Below, piece by piece: positions 1,111 to 58,007 of a DNA stretch of 64,000 nt (the stretch's first letter is position 1; each line of letters opens with the position of its first letter). Position numbers and translations under genes: made by a program. This stretch comes from Takakia lepidozioides (Eukaryota; Plantae; Bryophyta). The notes beneath the pieces were generated by a model. That model saw only the letters and a program-made list of their open reading frames with translations, did not search any database and was not told the DNA's origin. The stretch lies in assembly GCA_030704615.1 (NCBI GenBank), contig CM060731.1:70432001-70496000 (forward strand), given 5' to 3'.

Positions 1111-1662
1111 AAACTGGGATTGCCATTCCCATTTTATCTACTTGACTTGACCAAGGCTTCGCCTTGCTCCGCACTACTAGCTACTACTTCTCATAACAAA
1201 GTCTACATACACGGGGTAAATTGAAGTTTTATGAAAAGATGAACATTTATTGGCTTTTCCCTATAAGGGAGAGACCACCCATTGGTGCCAAAAATGAGTA
1301 AGATCCTGATATACCTCCACTACATAGTACCTACATGAAGCACATAACCCTCCCCCACTTGAATGCTAGCTTGAATGTACCTTGATTGGATAAGACCCAT
1401 AAATGAAACCACAAAAAGGTGGCATAAGTACAAAATATTGGATGTTTTATGCAGAGTTTCATCTATTTTCGGACAGAAGGACACGGGTCGAAACGGATGA
1501 CAAAATCCCTTGTACCGATGAAGTTCGTTGAATGGACGTCATTTGTGGCGTTCAATACCCTAGAATGTCGAGGAGATGGAGAGAGGACTGCGGCAAGGCA
1601 AGGATGCTAGCAGTAAGGTTTGTATAGAGCATGGATAGCTTAAGGAGCAGGTGTAGAGTTTG

Positions 1663-2051
1663 GCTCATCCAAGAGGGCCGAATTTCAAGCTCAAGATTAC
1701 CTATGATTCCCTCTGGATCCATAGCTACAAGAAACCTGCATTGGTAGATGGTCAACTGGAAGTCGCAGCAGCAGCGGCACAATTGATAAATCAGGCACTG
1801 CTAATGAAGGTACCTTCTTCAACACATTTCACCCTGTTTTTTCCTCTTATCAGAATCGGCCCTAAAATTCCATGTTGAGTTCTAAAAATTAGCCGGTTGA
1901 GTGAATCTTTGATAATTTGGAGTGACTTTGACATGATATTGCCAACGTGACAACAAGAAAGTAAACAAAAACACGTAACATAGATGAGGAGTAGTTGTGG
2001 AATGAATACTTTTCTGATCCCAGTCAATGGTGGGACAACCAAGGCAAACCG
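1663..2051 (+). pseudogene. Orphan PDF-motif (OSB-type) exons: second-half exon followed by the first-half exon of the next motif
   Basis: 1666-1809 reads HPRGPNFKLKITYDSLWIHSYKKPALVDGQLE..., donor AAG|GTACC. 1986-2051 reads EE*LWNEYFSDPSQWWDNQGKP|GTGAAT. Highly similar to copies at 28.5-30.8 and 36.8-37.3 kb. Confidence 0.75.
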
Positions 2052-6826: not shown

Positions 6827-7300
6827 AAGCGCGCGTGCGAGCTTGACAACCTTGGAGAAAACCACCAGGATAGAGCTGAGCAGCCACAGTTTTAACACAA
6901 CTTTGTAAGACTAAACGTAACCACAGCTTTGTGAAACTAAACGGAATCGCCAACCCGCACGCTCAAGTATCTTGCAAGTTCCAGGGAAAGATCATACTTT
7001 AATGCCATGCTTGGGAAGAAAACATTGCGATACGCACACGAAGAGTCGTTTATGAACATCCTCTACCTTGTGAAAGGGGGTTGTCATGGTCAGCTGGTAT
7101 GATGCCTCCCTCTTAGGTGTGCTTTGTTGCTTTATTTCAATGTATTCTATAGCGTAACTCTCCAATAATCTGTGATGATCGGCACCGATCATCACAAATA
7201 CTTGACTGATCAGTTTGTTGCATGCTTATGTTTTGAAGTGCCAATCTACAAACTTCCATTATTGTTTGTGTTTCGCACCCTAACCTTCAGTCTTTCGCAG

Positions 7301-16100: not shown

Positions 16101-16213
16101 CACAGCTGTTCTTCGCTTGCCACTTGACCTATGTGCAAGAACTGCAATAATTTGAGACCATTGCAAGCGGCCTGAGTCTCTACAGGGAGCACTGCGCTAG
16201 CTTTGGATAGCAT
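13112..16213 (-). CDS. PDF-motif + PLS-class PPR protein ending in E1 (gene 1)
   Basis: Predicted exons 16213 (or acceptor 16141)-16049, 15831-15650, 15461-13112 with GT-AG introns in phases 0 and 2. PDF motif LWQEFLLDPSRWWDNRFEK|KIPSSPQFKHKRTEEVDWIGRWSNPHWARA. About 20 PPR motifs at 303-nt triplet period, then P2-L2-S2-E1. True start codon uncertain. Confidence 0.85.
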
Positions 16214-17406: not shown

Positions 17407-17991
17407 CTAGGCTACAGAGTACAGGCGCCCAAACTCATCTCCTTCGGTGGTTTTCTTCTTAGGACCCCACAGGAAGAAAGCAGTCCACTTGTTTATATCG
17501 TACCCCGTGCCCAATTCGATAGTGTGGGTGACCACATAGCCCTTCACCAGGCTCAGGAAGTCGCCGGTGCCACCATAGATGGACAGCGAGCTGTTAGAGG
17601 CATAGACATCGATTATACCTTGGATGTTGAACGTCCCGTTGTAGGGGGTGGTCATTTTAACAGTGGCGGTTATCAAGATTCTGTAGGTGGCGGACTGAAA
17701 GTGATACGTCGATGTCCCAACAGCCACACCATACTGTGTGGAATTCCGCTCTTTGGTCTCTGTCAAATACTCTTCAAACACAGACATCCTTCCTAAGGTC
17801 GAATTTGTAAGCTGCACAATTGTGTCATTCAAATCGGACCCATACGTTTCGTACTGGTACCAAGTGAGATTCGTGGTCTTGAAGCTGGTTTTACTCAACT
17901 CATGTTCACCCATCACAGGCGTACCCAGCATCATCACCACCAGAAATCCCACTGCCACAAGAGACCCCATGGCTGCCTGCAATTTAGCCAT
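17407..17991 (-). CDS. Secreted dirigent-like protein (194 aa, intronless)
   Basis: N-terminal hydrophobic signal peptide, several NxS/T sites, dirigent-type motifs GRMSVFEEYLT, GTFNIQG and SIYGGTGDF. Confidence 0.75.
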   Translation of the reverse strand: MAKLQAAMGSLVAVGFLVVMMLGTPVMGEHELSKTSFKTTNLTWYQYETYGSDLNDTIVQLTNSTLGRMSVFEEYLTETKERNSTQYGVAVGTSTYHFQSATYRILITATVKMTTPYNGTFNIQGIIDVYASNSSLSIYGGTGDFLSLVKGYVVTHTIELGTGYDINKWTAFFLWGPKKKTTEGDEFGRLYSVA

Positions 17992-25800: not shown

Positions 25801-28530
25801 GGGTAATTGCAATACATACAAGTATGAGGTTCATGGACGAGCTATGGCTTATGTGAAGCCACTAGACCTGTTGCTATGCTCTCTTGGGCTCTCACGGCCC
25901 ACCAGAGGCGCCCCCAACTCACCAAACAAGCTCTTTGCTTTCCAACAAACTCTCTTGCTCCATGAAACTCACAAAATAAAGCTGAAAAATACACATCTTT
26001 GTCACCTTGGGGCACTTGCATCTCTCATGCATATTCCCTGGCTCTAGGGCCCCTCGTTGCTGCCCTTCCAGCCCCGCTCTTGCCACTCCAAGAGCCCTTA
26101 CACTGCTGAGTTGCAGATTGAAACTCCAACTCAGCACATGCTTCACAAGTGCACTGATTTCCACACAAAATGGACCAGCCCTCTCTCTTCACTCCTACCT
26201 CTTCATGAGCTTGGAGCTGAAGCTCCCAACAGGCTGCGATGCATCCCCTCGCAGCTCCACTATTCGGCTGCTCCTCATCTACCCGCAACAACTAGTTTCG
26301 GGCATAAATACCTGGAGCTGATCATATCATCTCCAACCTGCAACACACTAGCTTCCCATGCGAAGCCCACATTCCTGCAGCTCATTAACTCGGCCTACAA
26401 CTGAAGAAGACGACCACCAGTTCGCCCACTCGTGGCCAACATCTCCTCCGCTTCACACTAGAAGCCCCAACTTGGTTGCCATAGCGTTGGGCTATGCAAC
26501 ACTGACCGCATCTCTATCCATTGCAAACCTACAACCTGCTCGCCTTCACACTCTTTCCGCTTTGGATAGGCTCATGCATGGATCCCTGCACTCTAGGCTG
26601 AACCGCTTCTCATGATCTGAAAACACAAGTGCTACAATAATTCGAACCTGGCACTCACAGACGAGTGATAAAGACAAATGATATAAGCATACAAGCTCTC
26701 TTAAACTCACACATTTGTACATGAAAACATCACTCATATATTAAATCAAGCCAAGTACACCACACGCCATGGGGAATCCACACTACGGTGTTATAGCTAG
26801 ACGCGGTGAGGCTCAACTCGAGAAAGATGAGCCCACTGCGATCTGCCGTGAAAATAACCATGCCAGGTGCCCAAACATGAATTGGCCCATGGATTGACAC
26901 TTGGGTCAATCCCAAATGTCAATATATAAAAGCTAGTTATTTCCTAGCTAACTTCACACTAGTGGTAAAATAACTTGACATAGTTGTTTTATCTCTTTTC
27001 TCATCTTTAACATTGTGGCATAGTTTTCTAGGATTTTGTGCTAGGAAATGCAGTTAGCTGACAACGATGTATGTTGTGGCACGATGCTTAGGTGCATGAC
27101 ACAAATTTTCCATAAGAACCTGGAAATTTTAAAAGCTATTAAGGGGAGCTAAACATCATTCGGCCACAACCCTCTCCAATTCACAAAAGAAGGTATAGTT
27201 TTTGTTTTTGTTTTTATTCGGGCCACTTTACACTTGGGAAAGAAATACCTCGAACCAGAAAGCATCCAACAAATGGACCACCACTACAAGAGATGAGCGT
27301 TTTTAGGACTACGGATTTGGCGGAGTCATAAAAACGGCACTAGGTATACGACTACAGAGCGCTAAAATGCGTTGCAGTCATAGTTTTATCACTTTATAGT
27401 AATGGATATCACTACATGACTCCGGAAAATTAGGGAGCATTGGTCAAACATTATTGACCATGATGACAATGATGGTTTTATGACTAGTGTGATATGTTTG
27501 ACTACACGTGGACGACGTTTCATGGAATCTTGTGACTCCATGACTAAAGATGGTTTTACAGCTCTATTTATACGACTACATCCCTACACGTGTCATTTTG
27601 AAAGCACATACATGAATGTATTCATCCATTGGATGAGTTTATCCATCGATGACATGGCATGTAAACTTATGAGTCCCTTACTGCAAATTGTTTCATAACT
27701 CTATATATATGACTATATCACTACACATGTCATTTAAAAGGCATATACATTAATGAATTCATTCAATGGATGGGTTCATCCATCCGCCTATACGGTGTGT
27801 CGATTTGATATCTGTTCAATAAATTGGACCTGGATGGATGTGGCTTAACAAGGATCGCAAGATATATGAGATTAAAATACATGGTTATACAAGGTTAGAT
27901 CATGTGATGGAAATTATTTTGAATCGTTAGATTTTACAGGATCTAACGGTCTAGATTGTTTAAGATCTAACGGTTTAAGATTACACCGCCGAACTTTATA
28001 TCGGGCTGGGACTTAGGCTTTTTTGTCTCCTGCGTTTCACCATCTATTTGATGTTGTGTCATGGAACGCGATGATCGCAGGATATGCAGGGGTGTGGGAT
28101 GGAGGCTTTGCAGACCTTCCTACTCTTGAGCAAATGATGCAGGAAGGAGAACAGGAGGAGGAGAGGAGACGAGGAGAAGATCCCAACATTCTTGTGAGCT
28201 CGCTGTTTTTGGGAGAGAGACGAGACGAGACGAGGAGACGCTCGCCGTTCTTGGGAGAGTCAGCTTGGTCTTAGCAGGCCGTGTTTCAATCTCTGCCTGC
28301 TCAGCTGCACCGTGGTGGTTCGATCTCACATACCAATCCAACATTACTTGACTACAGATACAAGCAGCACACACAAGGGGTCCTTTTGGGCTGATGGTCG
28401 GTCAAATCCTCTATGGGTCATGACACAAGGTAAAGGTCAATGTGGTGAGGATACCTTCTTCTTTGACCTATTTCAGCCTATTTTGCCCTGTTTGGCAGCA
28501 TGAAAGTATCCAAAAACAGGTCATAGAGAT

Positions 28531-28881
28531 GAGGAGAAGCTTTGGAATGAACACTTTTCCGACCCCAGTCAATGGCGGGACAATGGAGACAAAAAGGTGA
28601 ATGCATGTTGGACTACACTAGAGAGAAGTAGATGCAATTTAGAATTAGAACTACTGTAATAATTAGGGTTGGGGTTTGCTGGAAGAACTTCACGCCGTCA
28701 GTGTCAGCTGCTAGCAGCAAGTATTCATGATTTGTACACAGACAAGGATAGCTGAAGGACCAGGGATAGAGGTCCAGGTTCATCCAAGAGGGCCGGATTT
28801 CAAACACAAGATTAGTTCTGATTCCCCATGGATCAATAGCTACAAGAAATCTGCTAATGAGAAAATGGTCTGCTAATGAAG
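28531..28881 (+). pseudogene. Complete two-exon PDF motif inside Pack-CACTA 1
   Basis: EEKLWNEHFSDPSQWRDNGDKK | intron 28597-28777 (GT-AG) | VHPRGPDFKHKISSDSPWINSYKK. Confidence 0.85.
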
Positions 28882-29499
28882 GCACGTTTTTCAACACATT
28901 TCACCCTGTTTTCCCCTCTTATCAGAATCGGCCCTAAATTTTCATGTTGAATTCTGCAAGTTAGTTGGTTGAGTGAACATGGGATAGTTTGGAGTGACTT
29001 TGATATCATGGGCAAGGACCTTAAGGACTATCTCAATGGCCTACCTGCCCTCGTCACTAGACTGAAATTTAAACTCGGGGTGGGACAACTACAAGTGCAA
29101 CCACGAGCTACCACACTTAACATACATGTTGACAAGGGTGTTGTGTAGAAAAACATTTAATGCCTTCAATCCACTTAATATAATGTGAGCATATGCACCT
29201 GATTTCAGTTTGCAGACCTTTCAGCTTGATGCTCTTATGCTTGAGACATGGGACTTAGGTATCTGAATATACTGAAATTATGCCTAGCTGGTTGAAGTTT
29301 GTAGAGCCTCTTTTAGTTGCAGGATGGGGAAGGCAGGGGGCAAGGAGGCAGGGGAAAAATAGAATACTGTTCAGTATGACTCTTGGAGCCATTCCAGCTT
29401 AAAATGTGATGATGTCTCCATTGGGGCATGGACCTCTTGGTCATTTACAAGGGACTTGGTAGGGTCAGCATGATCATAGGAGTGTATGAAGGCTGGCAG

Positions 29500-29907
29500 C
29501 CTTGGAATTTTATAACCAGATGTCATTCTGAACATCCCCTAATTCTGGACATATATGCCAATGTCAAGGGAGTGTTCAACACTATGGCTAAACGAGATGT
29601 GGTGTCGTGGAGTGCGATGCTTGCAGGGTATGCACAGCAAGGGTGCAGGATGGAGGTTTTGGATACCTATGAGCCAATGATGGGGGAAGGGGTGAAGCTC
29701 GACCACATCATTTTAGTGTGTGTTTGCAGTGCGTGTGCAAGCCTGGCAGCCCTGGAAAAGGGCAAAGAGGTGCATGGTTGCATCACCAAAGCTGGAATTG
29801 TACCATATGTGATTCTGAACAATACCTCGTGGACATATATGCCAAATGTGGGAGCATTGAGGATGCGGAGGGAGCCTTCAACACTATGGCTGAACGAGAT
29901 CGTGTGA
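29500..29907 (+). pseudogene. PLS-PPR fragment inside Pack-CACTA 1
   Basis: VFNTMAKRDVVSWSAMLAGYAQQG...ACASLAALEKGKEVH...; frameshifted near 29830. Confidence 0.85.
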
Positions 29908-30040
29908 TAAGTTGAGTTGGTTGTTTCCTAGAACAAATATAGGCTGTCCTTGTCAGCTGCTAGCATCAAGGTAAGGATTTATGCATGATTTGTGCAGAGG
30001 CATGGATAGGTGAAGGAGCAGGGATAGAGTGTGGGTCCAG

Positions 30041-30811
30041 ATTCATGAAAGAGGGCCAGATTTCAAGCTCCAGATTACCTATGATTCCCTGTGTTGAAGG
30101 ATAGCTACAAGAAACCTGCATGGGTAGATGGTCAACTGGAATTTGTCGTAGCAGCGGCACAATTGATAAATCAGGCATTGGTAACGAAGACACCTTCTTC
30201 AATAGCACAACGGCTACAAGTGGGTAGATGGTCTACTACAAACAGCGGCAACAGCACAATTGATAGAACAAGACACTACTAATGAAGGTACCTTCTTCAA
30301 CATATTCCACCATGTTTTCCCCTGCCATCAGAGTCGTCCCTATATTTTCATTTTGAATTCTGCAAGTTAGCTCCACGTTGGTGGATCTCTGGTGGTTTTG
30401 GAATGATTTTGACATGTTATTGCCAATGTGGTCAACAGGAAAGTATTAAAAAAATAGATAACAGAGACGAGGAGAAGCTCTGTTCCAAAGAATACGTTTC
30501 CGACCCCAATCAATGATGGAACAATCGAGGCAAAAAAATGAATGCTTGTTGGAAGTAGACGCAAGTCAGCGAGTATGGTAAGTAGGGTTGGGGTGTTTGC
30601 TGGAACAATTCTAGGCTGTCATTGTCAGCTGCTAGGAGCAAGGCAATGATATATACATGATTTGTGCAGAGGCATGGATAGCTGAAGGAGCAGGGATAGA
30701 GTGCATGGGTCCAGATTCATCCAAGAGGGCCGGATTTCAATCTCCAGATTACCTATGATTCCCTGTGGAAGGATAGCTACAAGAAACCTGCATGGATAGA
30801 TGATCAAATGG
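30041..30811 (+). pseudogene. PDF exons (B-A-B) inside Pack-CACTA 1
   Basis: 30041 IHERGPDFKLQITYDSL.../KDSYKKPAWVDGQLE; 30469-30537 degenerate EEKL..EYVSDPNQ*WNNRGKK; 30715 IHPRGPDFNLQITYDSLWKDSYKKPAWIDDQ. Confidence 0.8.
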
Positions 30812-33800
30812 TTGGTCTTGAGCTGAAGAGCACGACCCCTGCAGGGATGTCTCTCCATCTGTAGATCTTTTAGGAAGTGGAAGGCTAGGGCCCAGCTTTC
30901 TTATGACATTGTTAGCTGATTTTCAGTTCTTCTCCTTAGCTCGGTGCCTTTCTGTTTCCAAGTTATGGCAGTAGTTTCTGGATGCAGTTTTTTTTCCTGC
31001 TAGACTCTTTAGCTCTATGCAGACCCCCTTCTTTGCTTGCCTTCCTTCTTACTACTCTTTCTTGTCTTGGTACGCGAAGCTGTGTCTTCCTCTTTTAGCC
31101 TCTATGGCACTCTATCCAGAGGTTATTTTTTCCTCTTTGTATCCAAGGACATTTTATGTCCATTACCTATAAAGTTCTGGAGGCCACTGTCCCTCTTTGT
31201 TAACAAAAAAAAAAAAAAAAAAAAAAAACAACGACAACAACAATGGCTTCCATTCTATTTTCCCAGAAACCTAATGAGAATTTAAATCAATTAATAATCT
31301 AAATATTATAATTGTATGATTTAATTTATTAATTTAAAATATTATTAAAAAACCTCTTTAGTCATGAAGTTATATACTCATGACTACATGATGGCAACGT
31401 GGCATTATATGATACGATATTCTTTCCCACGTGTAGGTCATATATGTTGTCCATGTGGACACATGTCACATCCGGAGTGCTACATGTGTCTCTCTGACGC
31501 CTCTCCAATGGAGTCATACTTTGTAGACATGTAGTCATATAGTTAGTCATATATATATCATATAGTTGTGACTACATCCTCTCTACATCATGACTCCAGG
31601 TGCCACGCACGCAGTCACGGCTATGACTTGCAAAACGCAGTCCTAAAGACTAGTCGCTATGACAGGGCTTTTTTCACTGCAGAGTGATGTAGTCATGAAC
31701 GCATATAGGACTGAAAAAATAGTCATATGTGCAGTCATAAAAACGCTCATCTGTTGTAGTGCACCTTATAAGTGGTCATGGGTTCAAAGCCACATAGATG
31801 TATGCTCGACATCATCGATTAGTCGACCAACCCACTATAAAAAAAGGGTTATTTGGGTCAACCACTTATCGCGTTACATGGGGACTTTCGAGTCACTGGG
31901 AGAGGGTTGGATAACCGCATTGCCTTGGTTACAGCTGTCCACCTTCTAAACTGACAATAGTAGTCCTTCGGAGCAAAGTTACACCATAAGTTACGTTTGT
32001 TTTGGCAAGAATCTTCCTTCTTTCCCGAACTAGGGAATAACTAGTCTTAACAATTATATAACTAGAAAATGGACGATTTTGTTCCGTTGCCACTCCCTTG
32101 GATCAAATGCCAGATCTTTCAATGGAAAAGATTGAAACAAGAAAGCAGCAAGCTTAGTCACCCAAAGTTTGCGATCATAAGTTTGCGAATAGTGTGTAAG
32201 TCAGAATAATCAGCCCATGGTTTTGCAATGATAGCCAACTTAAAATAGGATGGAACAATTTTTTTTTGGAGTGTCAGTGTTTTTTCTCATTAAGATATTT
32301 GAACTGGAATCATGTATGCTTTCCTGATGTTTGGTAACAATGACCTATGTCCCAACGAGTGTTGGGCGGGTATATATGTAGACATATATACTTGGCCGGT
32401 AATAAACAATGTATTACACTATTGATACTGAGGTTGGGTAGCGAGTGAGCATGCTCAGGTGAGCATAAGGGCATATTCCCCGAATTTTCGGGATAAATTT
32501 TCGCAGCGAAATGAAATTGACGAAGTTAACAATTATGCGAAACTAACACATAAAGAACAATATAGCCCCTATACCTGGTGAACATGTTACCCTATAGGCG
32601 TGGTTTTTTCTCCATAAGAGGCATGAGAGTGGGCGGTGAGGCTTCACCTCAACTTTAAGGTCATTTCCCTTCCACACACAAACATCAAAACAAAAAATAA
32701 AAAATAAAAAATCATCTCCTATGGATAATTTCACACTGCGAAATTCCGCCTGAGAAGCAATCATGTTGTGGCTAACAGGATGAATAGGTCACTTTTCAAG
32801 CCCCACCCATTCTTTTTGGATGTAGGATTTTTGGGTGATGGGATTTCTCAATGCAAAACCCACCTCTTGCTTAGTGTGTGCCCGTATCACCAAGTATTTC
32901 TGAGCAAGGATCAATCGTGAGAAACTCAGATAAACAACGTATGTCACGATCAACCACAACATTGCACAATGGGGTGGGTTTGAATGATGCCCGCTCAACA
33001 CCATTTTGCATCAAGTCGATTTCATCTGCGATGGTTTCTTTCTATCGCTTCCAGTACATATGCCGCTCAGAAGCTGCGCACCAAGCTTCCTCAGCCAACG
33101 TAGACTTAGACATTGAAACTTCCTCATGAGATTTTCTTTCCTCTAGTAACTCGGTGAAATGATCAACGATGATATCTGTGAATCCACCTTGCGTTGGAGA
33201 GCCTGTAGGTTTGCGGATAACACAACTATGTCATCCTCCGTGCCTGTGCTTACGATGACAAAGTGTTTTGCAGTCAAGACTTCATGTTGTATTGAGAGCT
33301 CATCCAACTTCAATATGGCTGATGTACATAAATCTTTGTGAACTTGTGCTTCTCACTATAACAGAACGCGGTATATCTGACTGCGAGGCCGCGGTAGTCA
33401 TGGTTTTCCTGACTTTGACCATGACTTCCCTATATTTTTGGACCAAATTGGGGCTTCACGGAGTCGTTGAAATGACTGTGTGACTACATAGTCCTCTGGG
33501 TGACTACGTTGGTAGACTTCGTCATGACTGCATGGCTCCGCACTAGACGGAAGGTTGGTCAATGATGGTTGACCAGCGCGAGCTCACCACCAAATAGTCG
33601 TTGGAATGGCTTCTAGTGTGAAGCCTGGTAGCCAAAAGGTTAATTTTTTTTTTTAAAGTTGCTTATAGGGTTGCCCATTAGCTGGGACTTAGCTTTTTTT
33701 CTTTTTTGTCCTGCGCGGTTTCCTAGTATCGAGCTGTTGTGTCATGGAACGCGAGGATTGCAGGATAGGGCGTGGGATGGAGGCTTTGTATTGAGCTATC

Positions 33801-34719
33801 GATGTGGGGCGAAGCGTAACGTGCACCGCAACCGCAATGGGCTCTTGGCTCCTGTTAGTACCATGATGTGGTATTCTTCCTGATGTTTACAAGTTCTTGG
33901 GAGAGTCAGCTTGGCTTGGCAGTCCGTGTTTCAATTTTACCTTTGTGAAAAAGGGTAAAAGGTCCATGGTGACATTGTCAAATTTAGGGTATCCAGAAAC
34001 AGATGTTGTAGTATTGAGGATACAAAGGGAGTGTTTGAGAATATGGCTGAACGAACCTAGAGTGTGATGATCGCGGGATATGCCCCAGCATGGATGCAAG
34101 ATGGAGGCATTGGAGACCTATGAACAAATGATGTGGGAAGGGTAAAGGCAAACCTGGTCACGTTCGTGTGTAGATGCAATGCGTGTGCGAGCCTGACAGC
34201 CCTGGAAAATGGCAAAGAGGTCCATGCTAACATCATCAGAGCTGGAATTGTACAAGATGTCATTCCGAACGATACCCTGGTAGACATGTATGCCAAATGT
34301 GGCAGCATCGAAGCTGCAAAGGGAAGGCAATTATTACTTCCATTGAGCGTTTTCATCTGTCTTCCTAGTGCAGAAGCTTGGGTGCAACACAGTACAACAC
34401 AATCCCTGTTTTATGAACGAACGTTGATCACGTGGATTTAATGATGGCAGGATTCTTCTTCGACTTGTTTCAGCTTGGTTTGCCTTCCCATCAGACTCGG
34501 CCCTGGATTGCTCGGCAGAGCAGAGCTGGCATGAGGGTTTTACAAATCCTTCACGATGATGGGACAACCGCGATCGCAAGGTGTGGCTTTTTCTTAATGT
34601 ACGATGTGAAGAAGTTTGTCCATCCTGCAAATGTGGGCTCTTGGCTCTTGGCTCTTGGCAGGAAAGCTGGAAAGTAGGTGCACACTCACATTGTCCAAAG
34701 TGGATGCACGCCGAACGTT

Positions 34720-36442
34720 TTTCTACTCAACACCCTTGTCAACATGTATGTTAAGGGGAGCATCATGGATGATCACCAAGTGTTCAACACATAATGCCTC
34801 AACAATTTTTGATCACGTGGAATATAATGTTGGCAGGATTTACCAAGCATGGGCGTGGTACAAATGCCTTGGAGACCTGTGAGCAAAGGATGCGCGAAGA
34901 GGTGAGCCCAGCCACATCACGTTTGTTTGTGTTTGCAATGCGTGTGCAAGCCTGGAAAAGGGGAAAGAGGTCCATGGTGACATCGGTCAAAGCTGGAATT
35001 GCACCAGATGTCATTCTGAACACTGCCCTGACCTGGACATGTATGCCAAATGTGGATGCATTGAGGATGCAAAGGGAGTTTTTGACACTATGGTTGAACG
35101 AGATGTGGTGTCGCGGAGTGCGATGCTTGCAGGGTATGCACAGCAAGGACATGGGATGGAGGCTTTGGAGACCTATGAGCAAATGATGGGGGAAGGGGTG
35201 ACGCCCAGCCACATCATGTTTGTGTGCATTAGCAATGCTTGTGCAAGCCTGGCAGCCCTGGAGAAGGGCAAAGAGGTGCATGGCGATATCATCAAAGCTG
35301 GAATTGTACCAAATGTCATTCTGAACACTGCCCTGGCAGCTCTGGAAAAGGGGAAAGACATCCATGGTGACATCTTCAGAGCTGGAATTGTACCAAATGT
35401 CATTATGAACCATACCCTGGTGGACATGTATGCAAAGTGGGTGCATCGAGCCCTGGACAAGGGCAAAGAGGTGCATGGCGATATCATCAAAGCTGGAATT
35501 GTACCAAATGTCATTCTGAACACTGCCCTGGCAGCTCTGGAAAAGGGGAAAGACGTCCATGGTGACATCTTCAGAGCTGGAATTGTACCAAATGTCATTA
35601 TGAACCATACCCTGGTGGACATGTATGCAAAGTGGGTACATCGAGCCCTGGACAAGGGCAAAGAGGTGCATGGCGATATCATCAAAGCTGGAATTGTACC
35701 AAATGTCATTCTGAACACTGCCCTGGCAGCTTTGGAAAAGAGGAAAGAGGTCCATGGTGACATCTTCAGAGCTGGAATTGTACCAAACGTCATTCTGAAC
35801 CATACCCTGGTGGACATGTATGCAAAGTGGGTGCATCGAGCCCTGGACAAGGGCAAAGAGGTGCATGGCGATATCATCAAAGCTGGAATTGTACCAAATG
35901 TCATTCTGAACACTGCCCTGGCAGCTTTGGAAAAGAGGAAAGAGGTCCATGGTGACATCTTCAGAGCTGGAATTGTACCAAACGTCATTCTGAACAATAC
36001 CCTGGTGGACATGTATGCAAAGTGGGTGCATCGAGCCCTGAACAAGAGCAAAGAGGTGCATGGCGATATCATCAAAGCTGGAATTGTACCAAATGTCATT
36101 CTGAACACTGCCCTAGCAGCTCTGGAAAAGGGGAAAGAGGTCCATGGCGACATCTTCAAAGCTGGAATTGTACCAAATGTCATTCGGAACAATACCCTAG
36201 TGGCCATGTATGCAAAATGTGGGTGCATCGAGGATGCAAAGGGAGTGTTCAACACTATGGCTGAACGAGATGTGGTGTCGTGGAGTGCGTGCTTGCAGGG
36301 TATGCACAGCAGGGACGTGGGATGGAGGCTTTGGAGACCTATGAGCAAATGATGGGGGTAGGGGTGAAGCCCGGGAAAAGGGCAAAGAGGTGCATGGGGA
36401 TATCATCAAAGCTGGAATTGTACCAGAGTCATTCTGAACACA
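34720..36442 (+). pseudogene. PLS-PPR cargo fragment with internal tandem expansion (ORF 35039-36352)
   Basis: MYAKCGCIEDAKGVFDTMVERDVVS... then five 65-aa units; frameshifts on both sides. Additional PPR scraps at 33735-33790 and 33950-34325. Confidence 0.85.
35256..36230 (+). repeat. 195-bp tandem repeat x5 (84 + 111 bp subunits) derived from PPR L/S motif halves
   Basis: Unit starts at 35256, 35451, 35646, 35841 and 36036; copies near-identical. Confidence 0.95.
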
Positions 36443-36789
36443 ACTGATAACTAATCCATTCATTGGCTGCATTGTTGTGTCAAAAGTCCATGCGTAGACT
36501 AGAATCCACATGTTCAATGTTGGGCAGGGAAAACTGTTCTTGCTGCCCAAAGCATGTGATAGTCACAAGCCTAGCAATTGTCTCTGGAAAGTGATGGATG
36601 ACTTGTGCCTTGGTTACAGCATCCACCCTTGTCAACTCTTGCGATGTTGCAATGAAATATACCTGCAACAAGCATTGATTAGAAGTTAGCTTTACTTCCA
36701 TGTCAGCTGCTAGCAGCAAGGCAAGGATGTATGCATGATTTAAGCAAAGTCATGGACAGTTGAAGAGCAGGGATAGAGTGGGGGTCCAG

Positions 36790-37329
36790 ATTCATCTAAG
36801 AAGGTCGGGTTTCAAGCTCCAGATTACCTATCATTCCCTGTGGAAGGACAAGTACAAGAAACAAATGGTCAAGTGGAAGCCGCATCAGCAGCGGCACAAT
36901 TGATAAAATTAGGCATTGCTAATGAAGGCACCTTCTTCAACACATTTCACCTGTTTTTCCCTCTTATCAGAGTTGGCACTCTATTTTCATGTTCAATAGC
37001 TACAAGAAACCTACATGGGTAGATGGTCAACTGGAAGTTGCAGCAGCAGCGGCGGAATTGATAAAATCAGGCACTGCTAATGAAGGCACCTTCTTCAACA
37101 CATTTCACCTTGTTTTTCCCTCTTATCAGTAGCAGCTCTAAATTTTCATGTTGAATTCTGCAAGTTAGCTGTTTGAGTGAACCTTTGTAGTTTGGAGTGA
37201 CTTTTGAGATGATACTGCCAATGTGACAACAGGAAAAAATCCAGAAGTTCAGGTAACGGAGACCACAAGAAGCTGTGGAATGAATACTTTTCTGACCCCA
37301 GTCAACGGTGGGACAATCAAGACAAATAG
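36790..37329 (+). pseudogene. PDF exons (B, partial B duplicate, A) inside Pack-CACTA 2
   Basis: 36790 IHLRRSGFKLQITYHSLWKDKYKK; ~36996 SYKKPTWVDGQLE; 37267 KKLWNEYFSDPSQRWDNQDK*|GTGAAT. Confidence 0.8.
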
Positions 37330-38194
37330 GTGAATGCCTGTTGGATTACAGAGAGTAGAAGATGCAATTGAGCATAGGAACTGGTGTGATAAGTTGAGTT
37401 GGGTGTTTCCTAGAACAATTCGAGGCTTTCATTGTCATCTGCTAGCAGTAAGGCCCATAATCATCCAAGAGGGCCAGCAAGAGGGCAGCTCTTTGTGTGC
37501 TTGATTCTCACTCCCATTTGGTGTTTGTCGTGGTCTCATTGGCAAGATATTTCCCACCATAGCCCCTTTGTCCCAAGCAGCCAGTTGTCAACCTTGCTCT
37601 CCCATCTTTCACCCTCTTCGTCAGTGAAGTACTCCCTTTCTCTTTTTTCATGTTCCAACCATTTAGGTGGTTTCTCCCTCAATACTACCTTCATTTGCTG
37701 CATTGCCATGTATTTACTCTCAGTGGTTTTAATTTGCTCATGCCCAACAGTTGGAAGAATTCCATGTGTTGGGCTGATTCCACTCCGAGCTGCAATTTCC
37801 ATTCTTTCCAGTGCTTCCCACAGGCTGGCTTTTGCTGGAACAGGTCTATCTTCTTCACTTAAATTTTCCTCTCCTCATCATATCTTCTCCAAATCTGGTC
37901 ACAGGCGTCCTCATTTCCTTCTGTCTCTAGTGCATCATGCTTATCCTCCTTGACTATCCCTTGTGGTTCAGCTCTTGTTTGTGTGTCTCCATCAAAGGGA
38001 CATCTTTTGTGTGGTGGAATGCTGCTCACAAAAAGTGCTTGTTGTGGGCTTCTTTGCAGGATTTTTCAGCTCTGTTCTTCCCTCTTCACCTTTCCTCCTT
38101 TCAGGTGATCATCCTCTCAATTCTAGTGCCTTTGTTTGTTGCATTTGTAGTGTGGTTCCTCCGTGTGCACACGATCTATTTCTCCACAGTGTAG

Positions 38195-38365
38195 AGAGAC
38201 GGTCTATGGCTCCCACTCTGGGGATCAAGGGAAAAATGTGGAGAGTTGTCCATAATTTGCATGCTCACACCAAAATGCTGTGTCAACGGTTAATGGACAG
38301 AAGTCTAACTTCTATGACATAGACCAAGGTGTGGCTCAAGGATGTACCCCCTCCCCCTTTCATGT
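38195..38365 (+). mobile_element. LINE RT fragment, same family as 58938-61403
   Basis: GGGATCAAGGGAAAAATGTGGAGAGT...GACATAGACCAAGGTGT matches 59830-59990. Confidence 0.8.
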
Positions 38366-40589
38366 TGAATTATTCAAGTAAGCTAATTGGGTGAATGCAA
38401 CTCACATGTATGCTGAGTGCAGGAGCCTCGTGGATGTAGTAGGAAGCAACAGCAGCAATTGCACACTTGATAAAATCGGGTATCCTCATCTTCAATACAT
38501 TTTAGCCTGTTTTGTTCTCTTTTCAGAGTAGTCCCTATTTGTCCAGCGAAGGGGAGGATGTATATGGATTATGGGTGTTGTGGTAGGGATAGCTAAAGGG
38601 GCACACAAAGTAGGGCTGGTTCTGTTTTCAGTGCACATGGTGCTACTTACAAAAATATTCGATCAGAAATACAGGGTGATGAACTTGTGCCCTTAGATTG
38701 TGTTTTGAGGAGTTAGATTCTGGGACAACAGCGCTATTTTGTAAATCTGACTGGCAGTTGTTTAAGAAAATCTTTTTTTACATCTGCTGTTGGCTTCAGT
38801 GTCTCTATTATGTCCTTTGCACTTTGTCACTTTGTTCTTTCTTGTGAATGATTTTCCAAATAATATTAAAAACCAAATTCTCAAACAACTAATTTGATGC
38901 CACGCGTCCAACCCAACAAACCACTTTACAGTAGACACCATGACTACACAACATCGCATCATACATTGACACGTGTCATATCCTTGGAAAAACACATGGC
39001 AACGAGCTCCTACAGGCATAGTCATGGGAATGACTTTAAATACATTTAAAATTTAAAATAAACTAATCATATGATGCCACGGGTCCAGATATCAACATGT
39101 TGGTAGTCAAGATAATGACTGCAAGGCCTCCTCATACTATGCCACGCGTCAATTTTTGGAGATGTCATATGACGCATATCCACAAAAACCTCCTGGACTT
39201 ATTAAAAAGAAACACGTGTACAGTTTGCAGTAGCACACTAAGTCATGTATGGTAGAAGTACATATGACTGCCAAATGACAGTGAGATGTATCACTTGGTT
39301 CATCTTACTGCAATCATACGTGACCGACCATCATGTACTCATTGTATTCACTTGGTTTGCACGACATAAAGTCATTGCAGTCATATGTACCGTTTATGAC
39401 TACGAGATAGTCATATATACCACGATCTGTTGTAGTGTCTGCATCAACTCTCACGACATCCTTACTGGCTTCTATCTTCTCTATTTCTAAGGCTGAAAGA
39501 AACCCATGTGATTGCTTCTTCTCCGCCTCGCAAATTGTCAAGTATCCTTGCCACTCCTTAATGGCGTTCTCTGTGTACGTTTTGCCAGACTGTCTCGGCC
39601 GCATTGCTCCTACCTTCGTCTTTGGCCTGCTGAGATCTTCTTGGTCACTTAGCGTTTCCTCGTCTGAAATGTCACAGTCAATGGTGCTTTTTATCTCTCC
39701 CCCCCAGGGCTTTGGTACTTTGAAGTCTTCGCAACGTGTGCCTGTTTGTCCATTCAGCTAGAACGGCCCAGATCACAATGCGACCTTTCATTTCACAAAT
39801 AATGCCTTTTGCGATGGCTTTGTTTATCATATGATGAACAGGAACATCAGTGCGTTGGTGTGCGATCATATAAATCCGCTCTACTCTTGCAATAAGTCCA
39901 GAATCTGATGGATTAAACAAGTAGCTGTAACCATTCTTGTTGAGCAAAGGCCCAAATAGTCTAGCCACCTCTTCTTCACTGCAGTCTCTATCTATTTTGA
40001 GTCTCCTAGGGGCTACACTCTCATTGCAAATACCATATGCATCAGCAAATGCCTTCCGGAACACTGGAGTTTTTCATCAAAGAATAGAGTTGGAAGCGCT
40101 GCGTGTAACGGTGGTACATAGAGCGAAGCAAGACCCTCTAGCTTCACCTTCACCCGTTTTTCACTCTTGATCTCTCTAGTCTGCCCAGTAACAATGCTGC
40201 ATGGTGCTGTCGACATTTTCAAAATGATCGCACTGACTGAACGTTTACTTAATCTATATTAGGCTAACAATTTACACTAAGCTCACAAGCTTCAGTACGA
40301 TCTGAACCAGCTTACACGAATTATGCCCAGCTTACACGGATCTCAGGTAGAAGATATCAGGTTCGCCATGACAGAAAATCAACTAAGTACAAAGACATAC
40401 CATGCTAACATCAATTCTGAGAATCTCCCTTACAAAGTATTAGCAAATGAATTCTCATCATGGGTTCTGGCTAACCCTAACTTTGTGTTGAACTTCGTGT
40501 TGACCATCGAGAAGAAGAATGTTGGCATATGTGATATCATGTCATGAAAAGAATTGAAATTTAATATAAAAAAAAACGATAAAATTCAC

Positions 40590-46679: not shown

Positions 46680-46916
46680 TTCGTGAAGTTGCAGATAGGC
46701 ACTAGGAGGTGGGTTGTTTGCTGATGCACCAAAAGAATGGTAAGCTTCCCATTGTGGGAGCAAACACTAATACTCCTGCTGCTGCTCCACTGCATCGAGC
46801 AAAGAGTATGTCAGGCAAGTCACTTGCCTCATCTGCCCAGGTGATACTCTCTTTCAGCTCAGTATGGAATTTGTGGGAGTAGTTTCTCCTCTACACAGAC
46901 TGTAAGCTTGTCAACC
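46680..46916 (-). pseudogene. Decayed E+/DYW tail of PPR gene 2
   Basis: Out-of-frame remnants VRKLRKMMSGRG..CIEVDK (overlapping the ORF end), HTELK, CSHNGKLTI (HSEKLAI-like) and PICNFTNL (PIRIFKNL-like). Confidence 0.7.
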
Positions 46917-49900
46917 TCAATGCAGCTGTGCACCCTGGGTCCCTTCGGACCCCTGCCCGACATCATTTTTCTTAATTTTCTCACTTCCCTGCCGCAACCT
47001 GAAAAGGCGTTTTGCTGCAAGTTCAGCTAGCTCCATATTGCCATGAACTCTGGAGGCACCAAGCAAGGCTCTCCACACGCCAGCATCTGGTTTGAGTGGC
47101 ATTTGGTTAATGAACTCTTGTGCCTCTTTCAGATTCCCTGCTCGGCCAAGAAGGTCCACCATGCAGCTGAAATGCTCCACGGTGGGAGTGAGGCCGTGAT
47201 CTTGATTCATGGAATCAAAGTAGCGACGGCCTTCATCCACTAGGCCCACTTGCCGGCATGCAGAGAGCAGACATATAAAGGTGACACTGTCTGGCTTCAC
47301 GCCCTCCAGTTGCATTTCTTCAAAGACTTGCAGGGCCTCTCTACCACACCCATGTCCAGCATATCCTGTGATCATGGCATTCCATGAGACTACATTTCGT
47401 TGGGACATCTTGTCGAATACTTGATATGCATCAGTTAGACTCCCGCATTTGGCATACATGTTAACAAGGGCAGTCTCCAGACTGATATCTGGCGCAATTC
47501 CGGCTTGGAAGATATTAGCATGGACTTCTTTTCCCATTTCAAGATCTGCCAGGCTGCTACAAGCATGGAGAACGCAAATGAATGTGATGCTATTGGGCCT
47601 TACCCCTTCCCGCTGCATTTGCTCATACATCTGGAAAGCCTCCCTACCACACCCTTGCTGAGCATATCCAGTGATCATGGCATTCCATGAGACCACATTT
47701 CGTTCAGCCATACTCTCAAAAACTTCACGAGCAACCGTTACCCTCCCACATTTCGCATACATATCAGCAAGGGCAGTCTCCAGAATTATATCTGGCAAAA
47801 ATCCAGCTTTGAGGATATCATCACGGACCTTTTCACCCGTTTTGAGGACTCCGAGGCTAGCACATGCACGGAGCACACAAATAAACGTGACCCTATCGGG
47901 TGTTATCCCTTCCCCTTGCATTTCCTCATACATTTCGAGAGCTTCTCCACTGCACCCGTGCTGAACATACCTTGAGATCATGGCGTTCCAAGAGACCACA
48001 TTTTGTTGCACCATAGTATCGAAGACTTGACGTGCATCCTTTACACTCCCACATTTGGCATACATATCAGCAAGGGCAGTCAGTAGGTTGATATCTGGCA
48101 CAGTTCCAGATTTGATAATGTCAGCATGGACCTCTTTGCCCTTTTCCAGGGCTCCCGGGCTGGCACACGCACTGAGAACACAAATGAATGTGACCTTGTC
48201 AGGTGATACCTCTTCCTGTATCATATCCTTATACATCCCAAAAGCCTCACTATCATACCCATGCTGAGCATATCCTCCAATCATGATGCTCCACGAAACT
48301 ACATCTCGTTGAGCCATACTGTCAAACACTTGATGTGCATCCTTCATGCTCCCACATTTGGCATACATGTTAACAAGTGCATTTTCCAGATTGATATATG
48401 GTGTCAGTCTAGCCTTGATGATGTCCACATGGACATCTTTACCCTTTTCCAGGGCTCCCAGGCTTGCACACGCATTCAGAACAAAAATGAATGTGACCCT
48501 GTCTGGCATCACTCCTTCCCCTATCATTTGTTCATACATCTCAAGAGCCTCTTCTCCACAACCATGCCGAGTATTACCTGCAATCATAGCGTTCCAGGTG
48601 AACACACTTCGTTTTGCCATATTGTCAAACAACTGACGAGCATCTTTTATGCTCCCACATTTGGCATACATGTCCACAAGGGTATTTTCCAGAAGAAGGT
48701 CTGGCACAACTCCAGATCTCATGATTTCCATGTGGACCTCTCTGCCTTTTTCCAGGGCTCCTAGGCTGGCACATGCCTGGAGAATGCAAATGAATGTGAC
48801 CCTGTTGGGGGTTACCCCTTCCTGCAACATTTGCTCATACATCTTGAAAGCCTCTCTACCACACCCATGCTGAGCATATCCTGCGATCATTGCACTCCAT
48901 GAGACTACATTCCGTTCAGCCATGTTGTTAAACACTTCATTTGCATCCTTTATGCTCCCACATTTGGTATACATGTCAGCAAGGGCAGTTGCCAGAATGA
49001 TATCTGGCACAATTCCAGCTTTAACAATGTCAGCATGGACCTCCTTGCCCTTTTCCATGACTCCTAGGCTGGCACATGCATTGAGAATGCTAATGAAGGT
49101 GACCCTGTCGGGTGTCAACCCTTCCCATTGCATTTGCTCATAGAGCTCAAAAGCCTCCTGACCACACCCGTGCTTGGCATATCCTGCTATCATTATACTC
49201 CACGTAAACAAAGTTCGTTCACGCATTCTGTCAAACACCTCGCGTGCCCCCACCACGCTCCCGCACTTGGCATACATGTTGATAAGGGTATTGAGAAGAA
49301 CGATGCTGGGCTTGAATCCATTTAGAAGAATGTGGGCATGCACCTCCTTCCCTGCTACCAAGTCTTTGGTTTTGATGGACTCCTGCAAGAGACAGAGATA
49401 AGTATTGGAGTCTGTTGAAATACCACGTTGGTTCAAAATTTGCAGCGCCTCTTTCAGTTGTCCTGCCTTACAGAGTGTCCTCATATTTCGAGAGGAGTTC
49501 GCATTGACATTGTCTCTTGGACCCCTTTGGAAAGAAGTGGTGACCATGGAGGAGGTCCCTGTTTCCAGAAATTGTTCTTGATTTATCTGTGCTTTCCTGC
49601 ATGACTGGGAACTCAAAGTTACAAACAATTACACCCAAGCCATCTAAGATCTCTTCATGGGGACGGGCTCCGTGCTGAACTTAATACAGTTACAGAACCC
49701 ATCTCCTTTGAGAATCAAGAGTACCCCTTCTAGTGTGAGTTGAAAACCCTTAAAGCGTCATCAAGACAATACCTGCTGCGTTCTCCACGTGGAGCTTCAT
49801 AGCGTACATCTAAATTCGGACCATCAACAGACTGTGCTTGACCGTCTATCATTGCAGATAGCTCTGCTTTTACCCAAGGAGGGTTTGACACACGGTCAAT

Positions 49901-50346
49901 CCAAAGGACCTCGTTTGTGCGCTTGTGTCTGCAGTCTGGCAACCTTGGACTTTTCTGCAAAAACCACCAGGCAGCTGAGAAGCCATAGCTTCAACCAGAG
50001 CCTTGCAAAAACCAGGTTACAACCACCAAAGCTCCACAGATCTTTTGGATACAAGGGGCCAACCTTGAACAGTATACTTTCAAACAACCTTCTCATAGTA
50101 ACAGTAAGAGCTTCTTTTGCTATTTTGCAAGGAAGCGTAAAATTGCCATTAATAGATTCCGAATAAAATCATTTCAAGGGAAGACCATCATCCTGTTTTA
50201 GTCACAGCTCCCTGCTTGAGAAGGTGTTTTGAAATCATAGATAATGATAGCCTCACCTTTTCAAAGCTTTTGTCCCACCACTGTGATGGATCAGAGAAGA
50301 ACTCCTGCCAAAGCTGGTCTTTACTAGCTTGACCTGTGTGCAAGAA
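46917..50346 (-). CDS. PDF-motif + PLS-class PPR protein ending in E1 (gene 2); 5' end undefined
   Basis: Predicted exons 50346-50257 (90 bp), 49954-49773 (182 bp), 49596-46917; intron positions and phases identical to gene 1. PDF motif LWQEFFSDPSQWWDKSFEK|KSPRLPDCRHKRTNEVLWIDRVSNPPWVKAEL. About 23 PPR motifs plus E1. Confidence 0.88.
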
Positions 50347-50802
50347 CTGGAAATAAATGAGAATCTTGCCAGCTTCCTATGGCCTCAGGCTCTATAAGTG
50401 CTAAAACATTGATCTCTACCAGCTCCTAATTGACCTGGATCAAATTGAGGAAAGCTAGTGTAGGCTTTCCATAGAATTAGCCTCTCCCTCTCTCACAGGG
50501 AGCCTCTGTGCCACAGTTGAGTAGTTCTCTGGTCTCTGTTGTTCTGGATTTCTTTGTTGCTATACTTGTGTCTTCGGGCCCTTTGGGCTCCAGACAGTAA
50601 TATTTTTCCCTCTTTTCCTTTTTGTGTGGGATGCCTCTGCCTATCTGATTGGCAGTGCAATCACAGTAGCATACATCACATCTTTATCTGAATGGAGGCT
50701 AGAGCAGCAGTGCTGGGATCAGTATAGTGTTTGCTAGCATGATGTTTACACCGGCCCTTTCCATTGATACTGAATTCCATCTGTTGACGATGGAGGATTG
50801 AA

Positions 50803-51136
50803 CTAGCATGGATATGATCTGAAATTCCAGAGTAGTTCCAGGTTTGAGCACTAAGAACCAGGGACTGATGGTACTTGTAAGCTAGACTAAGGGCGTTACC
50901 ACACGAGCGGTAGTGAGCACTAGCATGGATATGATCTGAAATTCCAGAGTAGTTCCAGGTTTGAGCACTACGAACCAGGGACTGATGGTACTTGTAAGCT
51001 AGACTAAGGGCGTTACCACACGAGCGGTAGTGAGCACTAACATGAGGAGATGGAGGATTAAACTAGCATGGATATGTTCTGAAATTCCAGATTAGTTCCA
51101 GGTTTGAGCACTAAGAACCAGGGACTGATGGTACTG
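50803..51136 (+). repeat. 117-bp tandem repeat, about 2.6 copies
   Basis: CTAGCATGGATATG.TCTGAAATTCCAGA... at 50803, 50920 and 51063. Confidence 0.9.
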
Positions 51137-53838
51137 AAATCTCACTTCGAGGAGTGGGAATTTTCGAAAAACAGGGTATCTCAGAGGGACTATGCCCACA
51201 AGCTGTAAATAAGTACGCATGCATGGAGAGAAGATTGATATATCACTAAATTCCACGTTTTTCAGCAGAGGAGATGATGGCAGGAGGACAAAGATGTCAA
51301 TACTTTTCGAAGATGTCGCAAGAGGTCGGGGAATCGTCATAGCACTCGCTCGCAAGAGTCTGGGGTCTTCCATCGCCAAGCTGGATACCCATTTCAGCTC
51401 CACAGCTTCGCCCATCAACCTGCATACTGCGATGCTTCCCGCCCGTTCACTGCAAGGAGAAGACATGCTCTTGGGTATGGCGTCTCCCTGCGCGCTCAGA
51501 GCTGAACACGCTGCCATCCCAGTGGCTCTAAAAGAGCCAAGACGAAGCTGGAGGAAAAAAGAAAAGAGAAAAGCACAGCGCGCCTACTCACAAGTATGCT
51601 CCCTGTGCTATCTTAAACGGAGCGGATTGCAGTGGTCACCCATCTACCTAGTACCAAAGTATCGATCAAAGACCCAGGCTTCGCAGAGAGACAATTGTAT
51701 CTCAGAAGAGACATCACTAAGCTAAGGACGGAAAGAGTCTCCTCACTGCACAGCATTATCCAAGTTGACAACTCCCAAGCCAGCAATCATAATACAATGA
51801 AGACTTCTGCTGCCGAGAAAGGAGGGAGATGACTGCTTTTCATTGATCTATGCCGTTTAACAAATGACACCCACCACTCAGTTCACCCACTATGATTACT
51901 TAGCATCTTGAAGAGATCCATAACATTGCATAGGGACACTGGGCCACGATATCAGACTGTTGGCAAAGGGCTGCATTTGTAGGACTTTGAACTTTTGGAA
52001 GCTGGACCCAGTATAAAAACAGTAAAAATTTAGTTTCTCAAGCGATCAAGTTGGCTGTAGTTTGTCTGATGAATCTTGAAGGCCCTGGATGGTGGCGGGG
52101 GAGCTCTCTCTCCACTAGTCTCTCTCTCTCCTTTGGTCGTCGCTCCTCCAGTTGAATGGAAGGGTGTACATGGAATGATAAAAGCCTCCCAAGGTGATAA
52201 GCCTCCTCCTTTCTCACCAAACTGCTCCATCATAAACATCAGGCGCATGGTATCAAAATATTGGGGTAGGGCAAGTTGTGCTGCACTAGTCCTGATTTTT
52301 TCTTCATAAGTAGGCGGGTTTTCCAAGGGCGTGACCCGTCTCAGTATCGATCAAATGAAGGACAGATCCCTTCAGTTCCAACGTTACAAGTTCCAACCGA
52401 CCCAGAGAGAATTTATTCCAAAAGCAAGCACATGTGGGATTGCAGTTGAGAAAACTAGTGCAACTAGCATGTTGAGGAGGGCAAGAGGCTATCAAATGAT
52501 AAAAGAACTGCACTCTCACAACATGAAGGTGATGGATCTCACTTTCTTATACTTTGGACTTTGTTCCCATTTATTTTATGCATCCAAGGACCAAGTTGGG
52601 ACTTGGTCCATTGTTTCTTGGCTTATAGTGTAAAGCATCCCTTACTCTAACCCTCCAAATCTGGAGGAAGGGACAAGGGACGGACATTCACAATATCAAA
52701 AGTTTATGAATTCCAGTGACTAATATGAAGACTTGCAATGCATGGTAGACAACTTCCGGAGTAACAGGATTTCCATTCATTCATTCATTCTGCAATAAAG
52801 GCCCACCCAGAGACAGATTTAGAAAACTGTATGTTCCTTGGTTAGCTACAATCATCACTTTTCATCGTTGTTGATAGAGACAGTCTCAAGTCTCAGCCTC
52901 TTCTGCATCACAGATATGGCGCATGGCTGGTGGCTGCACTTATATTGCAACCTGGGTGTATAACTAAGAGGGTCGAGAGGGATTAAGACTCCCTCATGTA
53001 AGAGTATCTCCAATTGTAATACATGTAACTGTGATCCCATTTGCTTGATTGTCAAGGCAACTCCAGTGTTGTAGTGTTGGGGGTGCATTCTCAAATGAGA
53101 CCGCTCACCACCCATCAGGATGACTTTAGATGGCGTCAGTGAAGTAGCACACCACATGAGAGTTGGTGGCCACTTATGGTAGCTTACCCTGCACATAAGA
53201 GAAGCAGCACACATTTTTCCAGTAAAAGAGGGAACCAGGTTCAACACACTACAGCTTCTTTGAAGAAAGTATAAAACGTTGTGAGATGAGACTGAACACA
53301 CAGATTCTTAGCTGGCACATGCAGTAAATCAGATAATACATATACCTTGATTCTTTCAATGCACCAAGCAGTTTGGTGTAACAAAATCCAATGAAGAAGA
53401 AAAGGCCGTTATCAAATTGCGTTTGTCTCCACGTTAACGCATCAGAAAAAGGCCATTCTAGCCTACACCTAATCCACTATCCCAATGAGATTAATCTCCG
53501 ACAACTTCACATACATGAAGTTGTGATTTCCTCTTTTTCTCACCCTTCCATGAGGTGGTTACATTTGAGTGCATCAAGACTCGTACCTGTTCCTGCCAAG
53601 TGCAGAGCTGAAGGCAGATGAACTTAGCATACAATTAGGAATTGGTATCTGCCAAACCGTTAACTGCTTTGCACCACTATGAGTCTTCCTAAAGAAAGAG
53701 TTATGACAAGTCAGCCTGACAAACAGAGGAGAAACAGGAGTTCTCCAAAACTGTGCTGTTCTACTCAACTCCATACAAGTAACAATGTGTGCCACATGGT
53801 GAACATCGACCACCTGCGGAGACATAGTAAACAAGCAG

Positions 53839-58007
<4,169 letters not shown>

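Follow-up and report, generated by a model that had tools for sequence, protein, structure and literature searches.

A DYW-less PLS-class PPR gene with a predicted N-terminal OSB-type PDF head in the moss Takakia lepidozioides

Under the PPR code, a PPR array recognises one organellar RNA sequence, one base at a time. Most editing helpers found in flowering plants are missing from mosses, where single DYW-PPR proteins are believed to act by themselves. In Physcomitrium, editing is known only for DYW-type proteins, and DYW-less PLS proteins are splicing factors; Arabidopsis E+ factors use DYW2 in trans (PMC9459714). In E. coli, individual moss DYW-PPR proteins are reported to edit on their own (PMC6397227). 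The OSB proteins of organelles have a different architecture, an OB fold with C-terminal PDF motifs (PMC13393729, PMC6963530). The PDF motif of OSB1 is sufficient for binding single-stranded DNA (ssDNA) (PMC6963530), and both OSB1 and OSB2 prefer ssDNA over RNA (PMC4166229).

Recent surveys of Physcomitrium PPR proteins, editing-factor fusions and OSB genes do not mention a PDF-PPR combination: PDF is not among the extra domains given for the Physcomitrium proteins (PMC9459714) or among the fusions that a kingdom-wide survey of 2026 lists (PMC13386178), and a 2026 survey of OSB genes, in which PPR is unmentioned, kept only proteins with both an OB fold and PDF (PMC13393729). No description of such a fusion was found in the literature searched, subscription journals being largely outside that search. 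Here we describe a pair of genes with this combination in a window of the genome of Takakia lepidozioides, a moss with 2,016 PPR genes; the window is the whole stretch of 64,000 nucleotides that was analysed. On its sequence features the second of them, gene 2 (46917-50346, minus strand; to 51517 with a candidate first exon), is a DYW-less PLS-class PPR gene with an N-terminal OSB-type PDF head (Table 1).

Table 1. Positions in the window of the predicted parts of gene 2 and of its paralog, gene 1 (a slash marks a splice junction).
Feature	Position	Strand	Description
Gene 2, candidate first exon	51217-51517	-	Possible transit peptide; open frame from ATG at 51517 to donor C/GTACTT
Gene 2, exon A	50257-50333	-	First half of PDF module (LWQEFF...WWD); 77 nt; conserved phase-1 acceptor
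Gene 2, intron 1	49955-50256	-	Splits PDF module; phase 0; 302 nt; GT-AG
Gene 2, exon B	49773-49954	-	Second half of PDF module (signature PDC) and 30-residue linker; 182 nt
Gene 2, intron 2	49597-49772	-	Phase 2, inside an Arg codon; 176 nt
Gene 2, exon C	46917-49596	-	Linker, 23 PLS motifs, E1, start of E2, tail; 893 codons
Gene 2, E+ remnant	46871-47008	-	Out of frame; weak match to tail profile in shifted frame (iE 0.008)
Gene 1 (paralog)	13112-16128	-	Exon A 16128-16049, exon B 15831-15650, exon C 15461-13112; 20 PLS motifs

When joined, exons A, B and C form one open reading frame, in gene 2 as in gene 1; they were joined for this frame check only, database searches having used the exons singly and the dN/dS estimates pooled codons. 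The PLS motifs of gene 2 span about 49409-47085 in exon C, which has an in-frame ATG in its linker and ends in a frameshifted 26-residue tail with its stop at 46917. The donor of the candidate first exon is in phase 1, which fits the conserved phase of the acceptor, and the GC content of this exon is 54% against 44% downstream; it has neither a Pfam match nor a match to a homolog. A 117-nt tandem repeat (98% match) lies at 50802-51044, in the presumed first intron.

Most of the common exon structure that a first-pass annotation had described for the two genes holds. Exon B has the same length in both, the donor contexts GAAAAG/GT and CAG/GTATTG and the phase-2 acceptor TGCAG/G (49596 and 15461) are common to both, the motif that it quoted is found in the sequence, and the arrays differ, our motif parse giving 23 motifs for gene 2 and 20 for gene 1. 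Its lengths for exon A, 90 and 93 nt, are right for an alternative phase-0 acceptor (50346 in gene 2, 16141 in gene 1). However, seven of seven homologous modules, from loci of Diphasiastrum, Calypogeia and Ceratodon, enter exon A in phase 1. In each gene of the pair a corresponding AG/GT-CAA site lies 13 nt further in (50333 and 16128), so that the length of exon A is probably 77 nt in gene 2 and 80 nt in gene 1. Absent from that annotation were three features of both genes: broken E2/E+/DYW tails, changed near-invariant PDF residues and homologous introns.

The identity of the head was assessed with a profile of OSB modules only (149 modules from 65 proteins with both OB fold and PDF). Among 3,135 six-frame segments this profile found exon B with 35.7 bits (iE 9e-10) and exon A with 22.9 bits (iE 1e-5). 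Because a profile built only from proteins with OB fold and PDF recovers both exons, we regard the predicted head of gene 2 as genuinely a PDF module of the OSB type. When a profile was built from 16 PPR-linked modules, it matched 1,167 cluster representatives, many of them with the OSB architecture, an SSB/OB fold (Pfam SSB) with copies of the module C-terminal to it. Aromatic and basic residues are conserved to the same degree in PPR-linked modules and in those of OSB proteins. No OB fold or SSB match was found in the exons of gene 2 or in the upstream open reading frame, and OB fold and PPR occurred together in none of the proteins retrieved. No Pfam model matched the PDF exons; the motif lacks a model in the Pfam copy used, and this may be the reason that annotation surveys overlooked it. 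The module of one family member gave a confident fold prediction (pLDDT 90), and a fold search with the modelled module against the PDB gave no clear match (best Z 2.4). A sequence search of solved structures (best E 0.84) and a search of viral contigs found no relatives, and the ESM Atlas gave no usable match.

The head nevertheless departs from the PDF motif of OSB proteins at two near-invariant sites, F-to-C and R-to-S. Its signature reads PDC, a form that occurs in 0 of 270 reference modules, and exon A has S where WDxR has its R, a residue about 97% conserved; because of these two changes the module of gene 2 may be dead. The module of gene 1 shows other changes at conserved sites. The earlier description of a constant PDF head was thus overstated: conserved residues have been lost from each of the two heads, and between the genes the heads are 62% identical in amino acids, against 60-61% for the arrays. 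Upstream of gene 1 lies a decayed second PDF exon B (16589-16412, minus strand) that scores above all 200 shuffles; gene 1 descends from a two-module ancestor. A candidate second PDF exon upstream of gene 2 was rejected, its score not exceeding those of shuffles.

The array of gene 2 is well preserved. Exon C matches Pfam PPR_2 with an E of 6e-137, and its P, L and S motifs (35, 35 and 31 residues) recur with the strict 101-residue period of PLS-class proteins. The code pairs of the P and S motifs are canonical in 15 of 15 cases in gene 2 and 12 of 13 in gene 1, and the targets predicted from the PPR code differ between the two genes; that of gene 2 covers 23 positions, 15 of them specified. 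The tail has fared otherwise: E1 is present, E2 breaks off at about 46995, where there is a deletion with a frameshift, and no DYW (HxE, CxxC) occurs in frame or within 2.4 kb downstream, which rules out an intron that would restore it. In gene 1 a DYW remnant is spread over three frames (13096-12756). Gene 2 is accordingly classed as a predicted PLS-class PPR gene, neither a DYW enzyme nor an OSB protein. In simulations a frame of the size of exon C stays open in 0.6% of cases at 0.05 substitutions per site and in 13% at 0.02; because an open frame so rarely survives, the array appears to have been under selection until recently, or to be so still.

How far the likeness of the two genes speaks for selection depends on their history. 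Between the genes, both introns and the 100 nt preceding exon A align at approximately 70% (z 8-9; z 9 for intron 1), and exon B aligns at 69%, about the same as the introns. The alignments thus show gene 1 and gene 2, as reconstructed here, to be products of one whole-gene duplication, which explains their shared layout because the introns align as well as exon B does; dS between them is about 0.6-0.8. We therefore reject the shared exon lengths of the pair as proof of selection. It was from this layout that the first-pass annotation had argued for a selected family architecture rather than chance adjacency: that argument does not prove selection, and the conclusion stands on independent evidence from the family, given below.

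Rates of substitution are more informative, though the estimates are rough: the codons are few, and exon B read off frame as a control gave 0.56. Pooled over the PDF core, dN/dS between the genes is 0.38 (95% CI 0.17-0.81); for exon A it is 0.21 and for the PPR array 0.30-0.39. Within exon B, the PDF half gives 0.57 (not significantly below 1) and the linker half 1.40 (neutral), so that the whole exon stands at 0.91. Selection on the PDF exons, which the earlier annotation had proposed to check in this way, is thus visible in the core, and is not when both whole exons are taken together (0.63, CI 0.35-1.15, not significantly below 1). The comparison shows purifying selection on the predicted PDF core: exon B is without indels between the genes despite many in both introns, and the values for exon A and the PDF core are close to that of the array. 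Within-species pairs from Diphasiastrum and Calypogeia give 0.06-0.25, and because the window pair lies above this range, some relaxation in it is suggested.

The same combination recurs well beyond the window. A search with a PDF region among long proteins returned 75 matches, and all 75 are Diphasiastrum PPR proteins. PDF-PPR proteins are present in Diphasiastrum (dozens), Ceratodon, Sphagnum, Calypogeia and Adiantum, and hence in a lycophyte, mosses, a liverwort and a fern. A member is a PLS-PPR(-DYW) protein with between one and three OSB-type PDF modules at its N-terminal end; in 98 of 99 proteins the PDF precedes the array. Among the 120 best relatives of the array, the module was found in 27 of the 42 proteins from Diphasiastrum, in 1 of the 16 from ferns and in 0 of the 33 from gymnosperms; sequence identity between the array of gene 2 and Diphasiastrum proteins is 50-52%. 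Within the module, the phase-0 intron (after WWDxxxxK) has the same position in genes of Diphasiastrum, Calypogeia and Ceratodon as in gene 2, while the phase-2 intron is shared in phase and position with one Diphasiastrum locus (L002) and one Ceratodon locus (L005), and is absent in Calypogeia. Gene 2, its PDF module N-terminal to a PLS array and split by the phase-0 intron, belongs to the sub-type with a linker and second intron; in the other sub-type the PDF abuts the first PPR motif.

Both sub-types span bryophytes and lycophytes, and from this and the conserved introns we infer that the architecture probably predates the split between bryophytes and vascular plants. A tree of 76 modules (58 columns and poorly resolved, the window's own modules being left out) gave 4 label changes, compared to 23.8 when labels were shuffled. 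Together, the 75 of 75 PPR matches, the occurrence in a liverwort, mosses, a lycophyte and a fern, the conserved introns and the dN/dS values rule out chance adjacency of PDF exons and PPR array, and support PDF-PPR as a selected gene-family architecture. It is a real and ancient combination of domains and, apparently, an undescribed one.

The DYW signature is missing from 59 of 92 long PDF-PPR homologs, some of which are perhaps incomplete models. Two proteins of Ceratodon purpureus (P0049 and P0358; locus L005) are intact PPR-DYW proteins with an intact PDF module. Outside land plants, a protein of the dinoflagellate Effrenium voratum (P0177) has nine tandem PDF modules without an OB fold or PPR, which contrasts with the published description of PDF motifs as limited to green plants.

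The surroundings of the two genes are rich in related debris. Two non-autonomous CACTA elements on the plus strand, at 27282-31761 (terminal inverted repeats, TIRs, identical at 23 of 25 positions; 3-nt target duplication CAC) and 33354-39437 (21 of 25; TCT), both carry scrambled pieces of PDF exons together with PPR fragments, and are a possible route by which PDF exons are shuffled. In the second, a PPR fragment forms a tandem array of five 195-nt units, nearly identical to one another (35254-36232). Exon B-like and exon A-like PDF pieces at 1600-2150 (plus strand) are 85% identical to cargo at 36993-37425; no matching pair of TIRs was found for them. The remnant of a PPR-DYW gene, its DYW C-terminus still recognisable, occupies 4424-5049 and 6671-6871 (minus strand) and 5300-5794 (plus strand); a copia-type gag piece, which has direct repeats of 172 nt (5027-5198 and 6357-6528), interrupts it. 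The minus strand also holds an intact intronless dirigent-like gene (17407-17991; Pfam E 1e-14) and a WD40-repeat coding fragment (55355-55738).

What might such a protein do? We lean, by a modest degree, towards a head that acts as a non-specific grip on single strands beside the 5' end of the PPR footprint, with gene 2 encoding a non-catalytic RNA binder whose head is eroding. The array, its code residues intact, would read organellar RNA. The PDF module most likely adds a sequence-independent hold on single-stranded nucleic acid near the 5' end of the footprint, which would keep the transcript open or raise affinity, an accessory factor in cis. Such a grip would not be generally required, given the moss DYW-PPR proteins that edit singly in E. 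coli, and because OSB1 and OSB2 prefer ssDNA over RNA we do no more than infer a role on RNA. After the duplication, gene 2 lost E+ and DYW while its array was kept; from that loss it would act without a deaminase of its own, either recognising sites for a DYW borrowed in trans or serving in splicing or transcript stability. The PDC signature and the R-to-S change suggest a head conserved for most of its history and now relaxed.

Gene 2 could instead be a young pseudogene of the PDF-PPR-DYW family that became useless when DYW was lost, its open array and its dN/dS below 1 merely recording past function. The deletion of E+ and DYW, two changed near-invariant PDF residues, a first exon that is only a candidate, the tandem repeat upstream and the abundance of decayed PPR pieces in the window all fit this account, as does a pairwise dN/dS (0.38-0.45) above the within-species values of the family; at the lower simulated divergence, moreover, open frames are not so rare. 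Yet in both genes several indels fall in tails of 0.1-0.4 kb, whereas arrays of 2.7 and 2.35 kb have neither a stop nor a net frameshift, a distribution which suggests that the arrays were still being maintained once the tails were lost. With every code pair of gene 2 canonical as well, we consider a pseudogene unlikely. It is improbable, too, though by little more than the last, that the PDF exons are a working tether, retaining the ssDNA preference of OSB proteins and holding the PPR protein to organellar nucleoids, to transcription bubbles or to R-loops, so that RNA would be edited or processed while it is transcribed. The one activity that has been measured for PDF is binding to ssDNA, for which it has a preference over RNA, and the shared conservation of aromatic and basic residues agrees with this; but the module is missing from most editing PPR proteins, including 33 of 33 gymnosperm matches, and no Physcomitrium PPR protein is reported in nucleoids.

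We give little credence to the proposal that the PDF exons of gene 2 are vestigial and that the product, an ordinary PLS-E protein, starts in or just before exon C. The two residue changes and the value for the whole of exon B are what would be expected of such exons, and gene 1 has already let an extra PDF exon decay. Splice sites and frame are kept in both exons, however, exon B has escaped the indels that mark the introns, dN/dS of exon A is low, and a protein begun in exon C would have no evident transit peptide. The most speculative reading, and one we think very unlikely, is that in seedless plants the PDF head directs PPR-DYW deaminases to organellar ssDNA or R-loops, for nascent-RNA editing at the nucleoid or for sequence-programmed DNA deamination, gene 2 being a non-catalytic guide or competitor.

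The PDF-PPR family, large and ancient, suggests an overlooked cis-acting helper, a module borrowed from organellar DNA-maintenance proteins, and suggests a link between organellar DNA metabolism and RNA editing. Gene 2 itself, by its sequence a DYW-less and partly eroded member, adds little beyond the family: head and deaminase can erode while the array is kept.

Set beside known systems, gene 2 is closest to the PLS-class PPR editing factors of the E, E+ and DYW types. It shares their P-L-S triplets, the P2-L2-S2-E1 series and canonical code residues at the fifth and last positions, and its E+ remnant shows DYW ancestry; unlike them it has an N-terminal PDF module on two extra exons and, with E2 cut and DYW absent, it cannot deaminate. 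With the organellar ssDNA-binding OSB proteins (AtOSB1-4) it has in common a homologous module of approximately 50 residues with the same conserved pattern of W, WD, K, PDF, HK, LW, P and W. It differs from them in lacking an OB fold, in a module that is N-terminal and joined to a PPR array, and in the signature PDC. The RRM-PPR, MORF-PPR and RanBP2-zinc-finger-PPR fusions (PMC13386178) likewise join a small nucleic-acid-binding or helper domain in cis to PPR; in PDF-PPR, by contrast, the donor domain comes from an organellar DNA-maintenance family and is joined to PLS/DYW arrays, in dozens of genes in a lycophyte. Finally, PpPPR_9 and PpPPR_31, the DYW-less splicing factors of Physcomitrium, resemble gene 2 in having a PLS array without a deaminase; gene 2 differs in its 23 motifs, its E1 and its PDF head, and the likeness described here is one of architecture.
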